NCBI RefSeq assembly: GCF_006345805.1
Contig: NC_043005.1
Span: 32,798,001 to 32,862,000 of the forward strand
Length of the DNA: 64,000 nucleotides
Source of the DNA: Octopus sinensis
Lineage: Eukaryota
Direction of reading: 5' to 3'
In this document: positions 36,241-51,335 of the stretch, piece after piece
Layout of the letters: each line of letters starts with the position of its first letter
How positions within the stretch are numbered: the first letter of the stretch is position 1
Program-made: the position numbers and the translations under genes
Notes under the pieces: generated by a model
Databases searched by the model: none
Seen by the model: only the letters and a program-made list of their open reading frames with translations
What the model was told of the DNA's origin: nothing

Positions 36241-36983
36241 TAGGACACTATAAGGAAATCCGTCGGAAGGATAATCCCGAGGATAAAGAAATAAGAACTC
36301 ATAATATGGTAGAAGCCACTCATAGTAAAAAGGAATACTGGCGGATGTACCAGTGAAGACCTTCAATAAAATGTAAGCACATCAGACTTGTTATAATGAT
36401 TTGGGATAGAGAAGAGAAACGGTGCACAGTTGTGGAAATTAGCTGCCCAGTGGATGTTAACATAAAGCTGAAGATCAGTGAAAAAGAGAATACCTAAGCG
36501 GAACTATTGAGAAATCTGCAGTTGCTCTTTCCAGATTACAAGTTCAAATTTATAGCTATAATTATGTAACACACTGCCTAAATAGCAATCTTGAGAAATT
36601 AAGCTTCTCAAAACCAGAAAGGAGAAAGCTAATTCGAAGACTGCAGATCCAATCCATCACTGGAACTGTAAAAATCTGTAAAACTTTCCAGAAGTTTAAC
36701 ATTTAAATATATATGGGCATGTCTACATACGCAATTATATGCATGACAATGCATACATAAAACATACAAATCTGCAACTACATATCTACATACATACATA
36801 CATACATACATACATACATACATACATACATACATACATACATACATACATACATACATACATACATACATACATGCAAACAAACAAAAGATCATGTTGT
36901 TGATGTTGAAATTTCCATGAAGGTGCCTTGAATCCAGGTTCTTTCTCTATTGGCAAGAAATCTTGAAATAAACTGAATAATGA
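36241..36983 (+). mobile_element. R4-like LINE, (CATA)n-flanked family, copy 1 (RLE + 3' UTR with internal (CATA)n)
   Basis: EIRRKDNPEDKEIR, IWDREEKRCTVVEISCP.DVNIKLKISEKEN, LQIQSITGTVKICKTFQKF. 5' flank catacatacataga; 3' junction aataatga|catacatac; internal (CATA)n at 36788-36875. Confidence 0.9.
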
Positions 36984-36992
36984 CATACATAC

Positions 36993-37273
36993 AATACACT
37001 TCCTAAATACCAATCTTAAGAAATTAGGCTTCTCAAAACCAGAAAGGAACTGTAAAAATCTGTAAAACTTTCCAGAAGTTTATCATTTGAATATATACGA
37101 GCATGTTTAGATATGCAACTATATGCATGAGAATACATACATAAAACAAAACATACAAATCTGCATATATACACACATACACACAAACAAAAATACCCCG
37201 TTGTTGATATTGAAATTCCTATGAAGGAGCCTTGGATCTAGGTTAGAAATCTTGAAGTAAAACTGAACAATAA
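36993..37273 (+). mobile_element. R4-like LINE, (CATA)n-flanked family, copy 2 (short 3' fragment)
   Basis: Homologous to the 3' end of copy 1. It starts right after that copy's catacatac flank and ends aacaataa|catacatac. Confidence 0.85.
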
Positions 37274-38500
37274 CATACATACTGGTAAGAATCAATTGAA
37301 ATAAAACTGAATGACACACATATATACTTACGTATGTATGTGTGTGTGTGTGTGTGTATGTATATGTATGTATGTATACATACACACACATACCTGTCAT
37401 TGTACATTTTTATGCATACACTCATACACTTGCTTATATATATATATATATATATATATATATATATATCACCCACACACATACATACGTACGTACATGC
37501 ATACATACATAAATACATGCATTCATTCATTCAATATGTGTGTGTATGTGTATCCAGTTACGCAGAGATTAGGAAAGCTGCTATCGTTTCTTGCATTATT
37601 CCATGTATTATATATAACCCTTAATATAATTCTGTCTATTCCACACCATTCCTCAATATACTCCTGACATCACATCCCCCCCCCATCATCACAACCATCA
37701 CCACCACCACCAAACCCTTCAATACCCATAATCTTAGTCCTTTTTTTTCTCCTTTCGTTTTTCTTGTCTAACTAAACAGTAACTTAAAAACGACAAAACA
37801 AAAAAAAAAAAAGAGAGAAAAAAAATGCCTCCCATCCCACTCCACCCAATTTTCTGGGGGTACATGATATGGTTTTTAACAATCAACCACAATCATATCC
37901 CTAAATCGGGATTGCTAACATAGAGTAGTGGTAGTAGTCGTTGTTTACTTTGGCCGTTACTGGAGACAAGCTTTTAATAATCCAAGCCTTGGACGCTCCT
38001 TTCACTCCTCCTCCTCCTCCCATCATCCTTTACGTGAAATTTATGTTTAGCAAGTACACTGTTTGCCTTTAATTTCTCTATTGTTTATACAGTTTTGCTT
38101 GGATTGTAAACTATTTTTCACTAGAATACTAGCAACGAAATTGTGTTGCTATTTACTCGGTGTCGATGGTGGTAGTAGCCGTGGAAGTGTGACGAAGGTA
38201 TTGGTAACAAGAGTGTAAACTATTATTTCATACACGCGTACACACATATTTAATAACCACACACAAACTCTCACACATATATATATATATCTATATACAT
38301 ATAGGTGTAAATAAACCTATACAGATATTCATTTATATAAATGACTGTGAGGATATGAATTCTGTGAATATATCTTTTCAGTGCACAAGCACTAATGCAA
38401 TATATACATATACATACATACATACATACATACATACATACATACACACGCATGCACACACACACGCATGCACACACACACACGCACACACACATATATG

Positions 38501-47632: not shown

Positions 47633-48677
47633 TTTATATATATAAAAGAGGCTTTGGGTCAAAATTGTGTGCACATTTTGCTACGTCAGAGGTTGGCGGC
47701 CAGACCAGTGGTCGGATTGAGCTGAAAATTGACACAGGCATAGAAGACGTGATGAGACAGAGAGTTGAGTAGGATAAAACTCGCCATCTGGAAAGATGCG
47801 GTTGCTATGGTGAGAAGAGTGATTTTCTATCGATTCAAGGGAGATCTAAGCCCCTCTAGATTGGCGCGATTGGCATCTAATCTATAAAATGAAGAGGGCG
47901 AACGTTGATACAAATTGGATTTTTATGTAAAAAGGGAGCTAAATGGGGCTGGAAGGGGATTAAAATTCACAGGAGGGGGTAACTTGAGGCGAGAAATTGA
48001 TTGGGAGACGTTTTGGGGGCGCTACAGTGGTTACTCTGCTGTGAAAACGGGGATTTTATTGATTTTGGGGGACACTTGGGGTCTAGATTGGACACCTTTT
48101 GCCCGATTTCAATCAAATTTTCAAGTGGAAGGCGGATTTGTAATTTAAGCGCGGAAAATGGGTTCAAAATTTTGAAAATTAAGGCAAAATTTTTGAAGTT
48201 GAAAATAATTTCTCATTTTTACGTATTTTTGCCTTTTATTTTTTATTTTTTACAGTTTGCATTTTTTCTGAAAGAAATTTACAGCTGCATGTAACCCGTG
48301 TTTAGAGGTTTCATTTACATGGTCAATCATCGAAAAATTCCCAAAATAAGTACTACATTTAACAAAGAAATCTTTTCTTTCCTTATTTTTAATCGCTCAA
48401 ATAGTGGCACGTACAAAAGGCAAGTGTGCTTTCCGTCGTCACTGCCTGATATTTATGATTGATCTTTCAAAATATTTTCTTTCTCAACTTACTCAAGATC
48501 CTTTGAGAGAGAGAGAGAGAGAGAGAGAGAGAGAGAGAGAGAGAGAGAGAGAGAGAGAGAGAAAGATAGAGAGTAAGAAAAAGTGCGGGAGAATGTGGCG
48601 ATAAGAAACAGAAAGGATGCAACAGAAAGTAATAACCACACCCTCACTCGCGCCTAGAGCGGGTCACCTTAAGCTAG
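47633..48677 (+). mobile_element. Non-autonomous Helitron with internal (GA)n
   Basis: 5' A|TTTATATATATAAAAG (TC mutated to TT). 3' hairpin actcgc/gcgggt at 48646-48664, then CTAG at 48674-48677 and host T. No TSD. Confidence 0.7.
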
Positions 48678-49397
48678 TATATATATATATATATATATAT
48701 ATATATGTATATGTATACATACATACATACATACATATATATATATATATATATATATATATATATATATATATATATATATAATATATATATATATATA
48801 TGTATATATATATATATATATATATATATATATGTATGCATGTATGTATGTATGTTTGTGTGTATCTATGTGTATTGTATGTGTATGTATGTACATGTGT
48901 ATGTATATATGTATGCGTATATATATATATATATACATATATACACACACGTATATGTGTGTGTGCATACATGTATATATATGCATACATACATACATAC
49001 ATACATACATATATACATACATAGATACATACATACATACATACATACATACATGTATATATACGTATGCCTTCTCTGATGATGGTCTCCAGGAGAATGA
49101 ATTTATTATGTTTTTTATGTTACTAATAGAATATAATGGTCTTTTTCTCTCATTTCACTTCAACACCCTCAACTGTAAAACGTTTGTGTAAGTGTGTGTA
49201 TGTGTGTGCGCGTAAATGTGTGCCTGCATGTGTATGTGTTTATTGCCTGTATGTGTGTGTATGTACGCACGTATGTTTGTATGTACGTATGTATGTATGT
49301 GTGTGTATGTATGTATGAATGTATGTATGTATGTATGTATGTATGTATGTATGTATGTATGCATGTATGTATGTATGTAGCTATGTATGTATGTATA

Positions 49398-51335
49398 TCA
49401 TTATTCAGTTTATTTCAAGATTTCTTGCCAATAGAGAAAGAACCGGTTTCTAACCTAGATCCAACGTTCCTTCATTGGAATTTCAACATCAACAACAGGG
49501 TATTACTGCATGTATGTATGTATGTATGTATGTATGTATGATGTATGTATGTATGTATGTATGTATGTATGTATGTATGTATGTCTAGATTTGTATGTTT
49601 TATGTATGTATTCTCATGCATAGATACCCATATCTAGACATGTCCATATATTTAAATGATAAATTTCTGGAAAGTTTTACAGATTTTTACAGTTCCAGTG
49701 ATAGATTGGATCTGTAGTCTTCGAATTAGCTTTCTCCTTTCTGGTTTTGAGAAGACTAATTTCTCAAGATTGGTATTTAGGCAGTATGTTACATATCCCA
49801 GGGCCCCAATAATTAAAGGTATAAATCTGAACTTGTAATCTGGGTAGAGTAACTGTAGATTTCTAAATAGTTCAGCTTAGGTGTTCTCTTTTTCAGTGAT
49901 CTTCAACTTTATGTTAACATCCGCTGGGCAGCTAATTTCCACAACTCTATCCCAAATCATTATATCAGGTCTGGTGTGCTTACATTTTATTGAGGTCTTC
50001 ACTGCCACCTTCCACCAGTATTCCTTTTCCTTATGAGTTACTATAGCTTCTACCATATTGTGGGGTTTTATTTCTTAGTCCTCGTTATTATCTTTCCCAC
50101 GGATTTCATTATAAAGTGTCCTAGCTACAACGTTATGTTTCATCGGTAGATAATACTGTGGTGAGAACATCGGACAACTGCTTATGATGTGGGTGATATC
50201 TTCAGTGTGAGCTCAAAAAAGTCTGCATCGGTTGTCACATTTTACGGCTTTTCCCGCATCTCTATCCCTTTTGCGCATCAGGTACTTGGTTGATATTTCC
50301 TGTTCCTGGATTGCTAACACATATCCTTCAAAGTGGGAGGTAATAATCCGGCTATTCGTCCATAATAAACTGTTTTGATGATCGATGTTACTATCATCAC
50401 AGAGCTTTCTACCAACATATCTATGCATAGTCTTCTGCTCATATAGGCTCATCCTTTCATCTGATGATATGTTGCTGTAGTGTTGTGCGACTTCTTTGGG
50501 CATATATTCTAGGTTATCAGACAAAGAATGTTGCTCAAGGAGCGACCTTCCAAATCTTATGATGTTATCAGCTTCATGTATGCAAACTTGGCAAAAGGAT
50601 GCACTTCGACGCTTGGTGGTAAAATGGTAAAAAGTTGTTGACGAAGGGATATGATGCAACATTCAAAGACATTTTGGATCGATGTTAAGCTTCTGCCGCA
50701 TTGTTTAAGTTTTAGGTAGAGGGTGGTCTATATCACTGTTTATGTGGAAATTATGTAGGCTTGTTAGTATTTTTCGGATTTTCACATCAATGGCTCGGAT
50801 CGCATCAAGCGTCCAATCAAGTAGCCCAAATGTTGGTATGAGTACTGGCACTGCAAACACATTGTGCGCCAGTTTTATTGAATGCAGAGAGTTCTGAAGT
50901 CCAAATTTTCTTTATTCGGTTGTAATATTATTTAGTGACACGTGTTTTGTTACAGGTGTCACTGTAAGATATATTTTCATCCACCCCTACATATCAGTAA
51001 CTTTCTTCATCAGATACAGGGGAAACAGTCAAATCATTGACGGAGATGCTACTAGTTTGGTTTATAAGTTTTTCCCTTTTTTCATAACCATATAACAACA
51101 TTTATCCTGACCAAACTCCAACCCTTACATCCTTTGAGAATGTTGTAGGAAGGTCAAAGCTCTTTTTTCATATCATGCATATTCTTTGCATAAAGTTTTA
51201 AGTCATCCACAAAGAAACAGTTTGTAATTTTGGTATTCCTGTTTCGTTGTGAACCAGTGAGATACCCTTCAGACTTCTTTAACATGAATGACAAGGGGTT
51301 TACAGAAAGTATAAACATCACAGAGAGGCTGTCAC
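49398..51335 (-). mobile_element. R4-like LINE, (CATA)n-flanked family, copy 3 (RT core to 3' end)
   Basis: DSLSVMFILSVNPLS, FFVDDLKLYAK, TSHFEGY..AIQEQEISTKY, CDNRCRL, VVEISCPADVNIKLK. (TATG)n lies on both sides (~49290-49397 and 51340-51480) and internally at 49510-49584. Confidence 0.92.

Follow-up and report, generated by a model that had tools for sequence, protein, structure and literature searches.

Octopus non-LTR retrotransposons and their relatives inserted in fixed orientation into (CATA)n and (CTTA)n microsatellites

When a retrotransposon is bordered on both sides by the same tetranucleotide repeat, is the repeat the target of insertion or a tail of the element's own making? The question is raised by a 64-kb stretch of the Octopus sinensis genome (contig NC_043005.1, positions 32,798,001 to 32,862,000; hereinafter, the window), in which copies of a long interspersed nuclear element (LINE) with a restriction-like endonuclease (RLE) adjoin (CATA)n arrays. 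A sequence-only reading of this DNA had taken the arrays for the target of the element. We compared the copies with each other, with relatives from other loci and with a second LINE lineage in the window. The copies are very probably dead, 5'-truncated insertions of an octopus retrotransposon lacking long terminal repeats (non-LTR) that encodes a reverse transcriptase (RT), a CCHC knuckle and a PD-(D/E)xK RLE, and that comes from a wider clade integrating in fixed orientation into (CATA)n or (CTTA)n.

Three copies of one family had been reported, and a BLASTN search of the window with the longest of these (copy 3) yielded exactly three matches (copies 1, 2 and 3; Table 1); only the start of copy 1 had to be amended, to 36237, and is uncertain by about 4 nt. 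Copy 1 encompasses the end of the CCHC/RLE coding region, a stop codon (36704-36706) and a 277-nt 3' untranslated region (UTR). When only aligned bases are considered, the identity of copies 1 and 3 is about 90% (Kimura two-parameter distance 0.10; the BLAST figure of 80% includes indels). The three copies are truncated at three distinct 5' points, as had been noticed and as their starts in copy-3 coordinates confirm. The quoted 3' junctions of copies 1, 2 and 3 were also read correctly (aataatga/catacatac, aacaataa/catacatac and aataatga/tatacatac, respectively, with the slash at the junction), and copy 2 indeed sits in the CATA flank of copy 1, separated from it by a 9-nt spacer. After copy 2 and a second 'catacatac' spacer, we found a further copy that is absent from the earlier reading. 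This copy 4 aligns to the 3' end of the element with a local score of 33, compared with at most 26 among about 2,900 39-mers drawn at random from the window; through microhomology, its 5' boundary runs into the spacer. The first locus is a tandem string that consists of copy 1, CATACATAC(A), copy 2, CATACATAC and copy 4. All copies in the window are 5'-truncated and dead, the coding region of copy 3 being disrupted by numerous frameshifts and stops and by a 6-aa deletion in the RLE region, and none of them is active.

All four copies sit in same-strand (CATA)n, and the presence of CATA repeats at both junctions is confirmed, with 5' arrays at 36191-36243 (copy 1) and 51337-51489 (copy 3). The window has a high AT content and abounds in simple repeats (125 rows of Tandem Repeats Finder output), and same-strand CATA-like sequence makes up about 1.8% of it per strand, so that a random insertion would hit such a tract with a probability of about 0.018. 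Both independent window loci lie in same-strand CATA, in the same orientation. Chance is an unlikely explanation because, despite this small share per strand, the two window loci and ten relatives described below are all found in arrays.

Relatives of the family were obtained via exact protein look-ups (L001-L012 denote their loci, and P numbers denote their proteins). The stitched translation of copy 3 runs from the end of the RT (FVDD motif and thumb) through a linker and a CCHC knuckle (CDNRC...H....C) to the nuclease motif RPD...E.S...EK, and the CCHC and RPD...E-I-S...K/EK motifs are conserved in alignments with the relatives. In Pfam, copy 3 gives weak RVT_1 (E 0.0038, below the curated cut-off) and zf-RVT matches; the weakness of the RVT_1 score is due to the truncation of the RT to its C-terminal third. 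The top protein match to copy 3 is Octopus bimaculoides LOC106878562 (69% identity). The RT of the near-intact relative L008 matches RVT_1 with E 2.6e-24, and its PDB matches are R2 proteins only (E 5e-29). For the CATA-flanked relative P0003, in which the C-terminal region is intact and 51% identical to copy 3, the AlphaFold model of this region has a mean pLDDT (predicted local distance difference test) of 91. In a fold search of the PDB, the top seven matches of this model are all R2 retrotransposon proteins (E 1.8e-10 to 9e-5; template modeling (TM) score 0.57-0.67), followed by other PD-(D/E)xK nucleases, namely, cap-snatching and restriction endonucleases; a phmmer search of the PDB with P0009, which consists of the thumb and RLE only, gave no meaningful match. 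Pfam detected no apurinic/apyrimidinic endonuclease (APE; Exo_endo_phos) in the 1,164-aa conceptual open reading frame (ORF) of L008, and neither a Myb nor a zinc-finger domain in its N-terminus; the window copies have no N-terminus. By eye, the N-terminus of L008 and L004 (W..ELN.DVY.CY...GYMKRLKKYWDEIHPE...TEKQLRQQ) appears Myb/SANT-like and shows no zinc-finger motif. The designation as an RLE-type LINE is borne out by the RT-CCHC-RPD...E...K order and by the R2 fold matches of the relatives, and judging from sequence and model, the element would belong to the R2 supergroup, though it is not R2 itself.

The flanks could be seen in ten relatives (35-86% amino acid identity), and all ten are surrounded by one and the same tetranucleotide array, oriented like the element, with five in (CATA)n and five in (CTTA)n; two more relatives show the 3' array only (Table 1). 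Site specificity is, accordingly, manifest as a same-strand microsatellite on both sides at the two window loci and in ten relatives. In the full-length relatives L004, L010 and L008, the array ends on a complete unit that directly abuts a conserved 5' terminus, GAGGAAGGAGCTC. In its longer form, GAGGAAGGAGCTC(A/G)CTC, this terminus is common to the CTTA-specific and CATA-specific full-length relatives; it lies right after the 5' array, at about 4056-4075 in L004, 5392-5411 in L010 and 4472-4492 in L008. The GAGGAAGGAGCTC terminus could be a promoter or a 5' processing element; R2 carries a 5' ribozyme. The O. bimaculoides locus of the best protein match, L001, was rejected as a source of junctions, being an internal fragment without ends. 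At 5600-5900 of this locus (CM046628.1), the family fragment adjoins tandem coding repeats that, by eye, are C2H2 zinc-finger-like (HKRIHTGEKPY type). In L006, the main copy is closely followed by another, 5'-truncated copy (8681-8789, about 109 nt) that belongs to a related family and has a (CTTA)n tract on either side, which is the same tandem re-insertion pattern as that of window copies 1, 2 and 4.

The window itself provides a contrast. A tblastn search with the relatives revealed a second RLE-LINE lineage on the plus strand, within 19648-23584 and 30418-33200 (matches at 19648-20010, 20611-21757, 22551-22784, 30680-31878, 32310-32840 and 34734-34937); in the CCHC and RLE region, its amino acid identity with the CATA family is about 24-31%. 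Arrays of (AAT)n border every copy of this lineage (30418-30515, 32240-32310 and 33015-33200 are examples), and the closest named matches of the lineage are uncharacterized proteins of Oculina patagonica and Penaeus indicus. The lineage follows the classical Dong pattern, with (TAA)n as the target, and the CATA family shares a profile with it. Two related lineages in one neighbourhood, each keeping its own repeat, are what target specificity predicts. The earlier contention that the CATA target differs from the (TAA)n of Dong gains from this comparison, given that the Dong-type elements in the same window are flanked by (AAT)n.

Could (CATA)n be the 3' tail of the element itself, templated or generated by RT slippage, with the 5' arrays arising by coincidence or from the tails of earlier copies? 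Such tails are usual in many LINEs, CATA immediately follows the 3' end of every copy, and copies 2 and 4 have as their 5' flank just the 9-nt tract after the preceding copy. Several 3' tracts are also short and tail-like, 9-29 nt in 7 of the 11 insertions in which both flanks are visible (window copies 1 and 3, L002-L006 and L008-L011). However, tails alone predict no enrichment at the 5' side, whereas the 5' array is longer than the 3' array in 11/11 of these insertions (53-235 bp vs 9-174 bp; sign test, about 0.001), which suggests integration close to the downstream edge of the array and accords with the 9-nt length of both spacers in the tandem string. Moreover, the 5' arrays are preceded by unique DNA rather than by the 3' module of another copy, and in the full-length relatives, the conserved 5' end stands directly against the array. 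At its 3' junction, L002 carries CATA and lacks CTTA, although L003, with 86% identity to it, is CTTA-flanked; therefore, the junction repeats come from the target and not from an RNA-templated tail. Tails as the sole source of the repeats are already largely refuted by these observations and seem to us very improbable. The proposal that (CATA)n on both sides reflects target choice was, in contrast, well founded: the relatives show the same pattern, and full-length 5' termini abut the array.

Still more improbable, to the point of being almost negligible, is a passive association, in which elements without any sequence preference were retained, or happened to be seen, in a microsatellite-rich region under low constraint. 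The window is extremely rich in simple repeats, as this explanation would have it, but the same-strand CATA-like fraction is small, and neither the orientation nor the phase of the 3' repeat varies over 16 junctions, all of which start with C(A/T)TA. In addition, the co-resident Dong-type lineage is bounded by (AAT)n instead, and the arrays at the relatives are the only tetranucleotide arrays within otherwise ordinary loci of 7-15 kb. Little scope is left for either tails alone or passive accumulation.

The sequence-only reading further claimed that the 3' UTR carries its own (CATA)n tract, and this is correct: the tract is long in copies 1 and 3 and short in copy 2, and lies between the stop codon and the conserved 3' module. 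The tract is found at the same position in copies 1-3 and, therefore, was present in their master element. It had been suggested that the tract is a functional, self-propagating target, so that insertions seed new landing sites and account for the high genomic density of (CATA)n/(TATG)n. The shared position in all three longer copies is compatible with this idea, as is the length of the two long tracts, 84 and 71 bp, which are as long as the target arrays of the relatives (83-235 bp), and tandem re-insertion beside existing copies is observed. The window, however, offers no support for such a feedback loop. A count of nested insertions, which had been put forward as a check, gave none in the three window tracts; the internal tracts account for about 190 bp of about 2,360 bp of CATA-like sequence in the window; and the tract is missing from the 3' UTR in 12/12 relatives, being restricted to the octopus family, and thus transposition does not require it. 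The other CATA arrays have flanks unrelated to the element: all-against-all BLAST of their upstream flanks gave low-complexity matches only, with nothing in common with the element or with each other, and an unfiltered scan of the window with a covariance model of the 3' module recovered only the three known copies (next match, E 0.8). Most CATA arrays in the window have no link to the family. We consider self-propagation improbable, although the element as a source of the CATA repeats of the genome, unsupported by the window, is possible genome-wide. As a microsatellite, the internal tract is specific to the octopus lineage, and any role of it is putative; on the simpler reading, a CATA-like stretch of the 3' UTR expanded in the master lineage.

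The last ~110 nt of the element were aligned for twelve copies from eight families. The alignment contains a hairpin with a 3-bp outer stem, a TT bulge, a 6-bp stem, a 5-nt loop and a C bulge on the return strand. Pairing is maintained in 93.8% of the alignment cells, compared with 25-49% in slid controls; compensatory double changes occur at all nine pairs; and the observed covariation score was reached by none of 500 shuffles. Folding of single sequences from the relatives predicts the hairpin as well. The thermodynamic z-scores of the 3' module (-0.4 to -1.6) are not significant, and covariation is the basis for calling the hairpin. As in R2, a 3'-UTR element would be recognized by the RT, and this hairpin is the best candidate for it. 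No Rfam family was detected in the whole window at the gathering threshold. In the octopus family, the hairpin lies downstream of the (CATA)n tract, so the 108-nt module is the ancestral 3' end rather than a transduced flank. A second nested copy was likewise rejected as the origin of this post-tract segment, which is homologous to the 3' termini of the relatives and carries the conserved hairpin; the UTR upstream of the tract contains no second module.

How the tetranucleotide target evolved was addressed with a neighbor-joining tree of the C-terminal region of the relatives and the octopus family, in which CATA-flanked and CTTA-flanked elements are interleaved. The octopus family clusters with P0001 and P0037; L008 groups with L012, both CATA-flanked, with the CTTA-flanked L010 as the next branch out; and L002 (CATA) sits within a group formed with L003 and L006, both flanked by CTTA. 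CATA also flanks the outgroup, L011 (35-39% identity). The interleaved tree and the CATA-flanked outgroup imply that tetranucleotide targeting is old in this clade. Hence the proposed shift of specificity to a tetranucleotide stands as far as the (CATA)n target is concerned, but the shift is not specific to the octopus, being common to a wide clade that includes the outgroup. To judge by the tree, CATA may be the ancestral state, and the one-base change between CATA and CTTA would have occurred more than once, in either direction, or else specificity at that position may be relaxed; L002 is a single copy and possibly represents an off-target event. In L011, tttagctacgaaactaaacaga occurs twice (3935-3955 and 4534-4555), in both cases with a long (CATA)n array immediately after it, and resembles the 3' terminus of a different, unrelated CATA-associated element.

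The likely course of insertion can be drawn by analogy with R2. The repeat duplex would be recognized by the protein, probably via the N-terminal region that appears Myb/SANT-like in the full-length relatives, and a bottom-strand nick by the RLE would fall at one constant position of the unit, 5'-TA(T/A)G^TA-3'; this constancy could be the cause of the single phase of the 3' junctions. The nicked strand would then prime reverse transcription of the RNA, itself probably recognized through the 3'-UTR hairpin, and frequent abortion of synthesis would result in 5' truncation. Target repeats would persist on both sides after the insertion, so that the same array can be hit again, producing a tandem string such as that of copies 1, 2 and 4.

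Several observations weigh against this account. The octopus family itself is represented by only two independent loci, and because the window copies are 5'-truncated, its N-terminal DNA-binding region is unseen. The octopus hairpin is imperfect in copy 3 and half deleted in copies 1 and 2. In several insertions, the 3' tract is only 9-13 nt long, and a short RNA-templated contribution at the 3' junction is possible. The nick site cannot be pinned inside a perfect repeat, and the choice of clade, R4/Dong as opposed to a HERO- or NeSL-like one, relies on indirect evidence.

Table 1. Features of the CATA-associated family in the window, of neighbouring repeats, and repeat arrays at the loci of relatives
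Feature	Position or locus	Strand	Details
Copy 1	36237-36983	+	5'-truncated; start at copy-3 position 1209; matches copy-3 1209-1938; BLASTN, and tblastn with P0002/P0009
Copy 2	~36993-37273	+	5'-truncated near copy-3 position 1551; three BLASTN blocks; three internal deletions
Copy 3	49398-51335	-	Longest, 1938 nt; start within RT domain; BLASTN
Copy 4	37279-37306	+	Last ~35 module positions (~28 nt) of element 3' end only (tactggtaagaatcaattgaaataaaactgaat, then ga)
Spacer, copy 1/copy 2	36984-36992	+	9-nt CATACATAC, leftover target sequence
Spacer, copy 2/copy 4	37274-37282	+	Second CATACATAC
Copy 1 5' flanking (CATA)n-like target array	36191-36243	+	3' part of composite AT/ATAC microsatellite zone 35853-36242
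Copy 3 3' flanking (CATA)n target array	49269-49397	-	Array extent 49269-49399, 131 bp
Copy 3 5' flanking (CATA)n target array	51336-51489	-	Degenerate continuation to ~51542
Copy 3 FVDD motif (RT)	near 51202-51213	-	Conceptual translation
Copy 3 CCHC	near 50174-50239	-	C-x3-C...H-x4-C
Copy 3 RLE core (RPD...E.S...EK)	near 49889-49972	-	Conceptual translation
Copy 3 stop codon	49652-49654	-	
Copy 1 internal tract	36779-36882	+	Perfect (CATA)21 at 36789-36872
Copy 2 internal tract	near 37164-37185	+	Short, decayed
Copy 3 internal tract	49506-49587	-	49513-49583, one interruption
Copy 1 3'-terminal module	36876-36983	+	Hairpin 3' half deleted; end ...ctgaataatga; covariance-model match 36885-36989, E 1.9e-8
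Copy 2 3' module		+	Covariance-model match 37189-37279, E 1.6e-7
Copy 3 3'-terminal module	49398-49505	-	Hairpin region ~49436-49473; covariance-model match 49392-49507, E 1.7e-11
Second-lineage copy B	20611-21757	+	
Second-lineage copy D	30516 to ~32000	+	
Second-lineage copy E	32311-33014	+	Intact 180-aa C-terminal ORF
SINE-like repeat copies	32030-32239, 18191-18394, 19308-19392, 22061-22212, 23087-23250, 23315-23475, 23586-23759	+	
SINE-like repeat copy	8918-9076	-	
Relatives, (CATA)n both sides	L002, L008, L009, L011	same strand	
Relative, (CATA)n	L012		3' side only visible
Relatives, (CTTA)n both sides	L003, L004, L005, L006, L010	same strand	L006 plus second tiny tandem copy
Relative, (CTTA)n	L007		3' side only visible

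Two further features of the surroundings were noticed. A repeat resembling short interspersed nuclear elements (SINEs), about 210 nt long, is present in 8 copies with 73-81% identity and has no Rfam match; several copies stop directly at (AAT)n arrays or begin just after them, and the repeat is perhaps a non-autonomous partner to the LINE specific for (TAA)n. A ~700-bp microsatellite complex (48678-49397), of which the 3' flank of copy 3 is a part, has CATA-type tracts in both orientations, plus-strand CATA at 48711-49059 and plus-strand TATG at 48823-48916 and 49269-49399.

Among the known systems, the closest analogue of the family is Dong of the R4 clade (Bombyx mori, Anopheles, Biomphalaria, Darwinula and others), likewise a single-ORF RLE LINE with the RT-CCHC-RLE order, whose insertions into a microsatellite keep one orientation and build up tandem or nested strings. 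Dong targets (TAA)n in most insects, molluscs and cnidarians, and is reported to have a Myb-like N-terminus without zinc fingers (PMC7998251); a similar N-terminal motif is seen by eye in the full-length relatives L008 and L004. The difference lies in the flanks, (CATA)n, or (CTTA)n in the sister families, instead of (TAA)n, and in the distance from the (TAA)n-flanked elements of the window, given above. R4 of Ascaris and other nematodes and Rex6 of teleosts, which we compared by description only, share with the family the presumed clade as well as the arrangement of RT and RLE, and R4 is strictly site-specific. The R4 target is 28S rDNA, and no microsatellite target has been described for Rex6 (PMC6274825). 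Membership of the family in the R4/Dong clade is plausible, with indirect support from the profile that it shares with the (TAA)n-flanked lineage and from the dominance of Dong-R4 among the RLE LINEs annotated in Octopus (PMC13282606, PMC8967140).

The only solved structures that match relatives of the family are those of the 28S rDNA-specific R2 (8GH6, 8IBW, 9DOU, 9NL2 and 9NL3). The likeness comprises the RT and the fold of the linker, CCHC and RLE, at the significance and TM-scores given above, and target-primed reverse transcription with a structured 3' UTR serves as the working model. The C-terminal regions, however, are only 12-18% identical, the N-termini of the relatives show no zinc-finger motif by eye, and the target is a microsatellite rather than rDNA. 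The nearest known target is that of Waldo (R1 clade), (ACAY)n, which includes ACAT, that is, CATA (PMC3812793). Waldo, however, has an N-terminal APE-type endonuclease and an R1-clade RT, in contrast to the C-terminal RLE of the present family, which matches only R2, and the shared target is a case of convergence. Microsatellite-specific RLE LINEs also exist outside R4/Dong, namely, the NeSL-related Togen, which targets (TG)n, and some leech HERO families (PMC4640811). These differ from the octopus family in the repeat unit, and the family might itself have a HERO- or NeSL-like placement. In the open literature, with Repbase and Dfam outside the search, we found no RLE LINE specific to (CATA)n/(ACAT)n or (CTTA)n/(ACTT)n, the only hit being the (ACAY)n of Waldo. 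The CATA/CTTA-specific lineage adds an apparently new target to the known microsatellite-seeking RLE LINEs, such as Dong and Togen, and not a new category.

A more ambitious synthesis, conceivable but in our view somewhat doubtful, would combine these threads into a previously undescribed, multi-genome clade of RLE LINEs for tetranucleotide microsatellites, in which the target flips between CATA and CTTA at 86% identity and the covarying 3'-UTR hairpin is the likely handle for the RT. The octopus branch would have taken the repeat into its own 3' UTR, maybe as a landing pad or an alternative priming site. If true, the tetranucleotide clade would be a natural series for mapping the determinants of target choice in RLE LINEs. 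Elements that are 86% identical but reside in repeats one base apart are a compact natural experiment on how R2-like proteins read their targets, a matter relevant to site-specific RLE retrotransposons as gene-insertion tools, and the covarying 3' hairpin provides a concrete and testable candidate for the RNA feature by which the RT is recruited.

Among the RLE LINE classes annotated in Octopus, Dong-R4 dominates; it is abundant in octopus genomes and has been recently active in O. vulgaris, and the respective papers do not discuss its targets (PMC13282606, PMC8967140). It appears that some of the cephalopod 'Dong-R4' annotations conceal two or more lineages that differ in their microsatellite target, which affects the reading of the simple-repeat and LINE content of cephalopod genomes.

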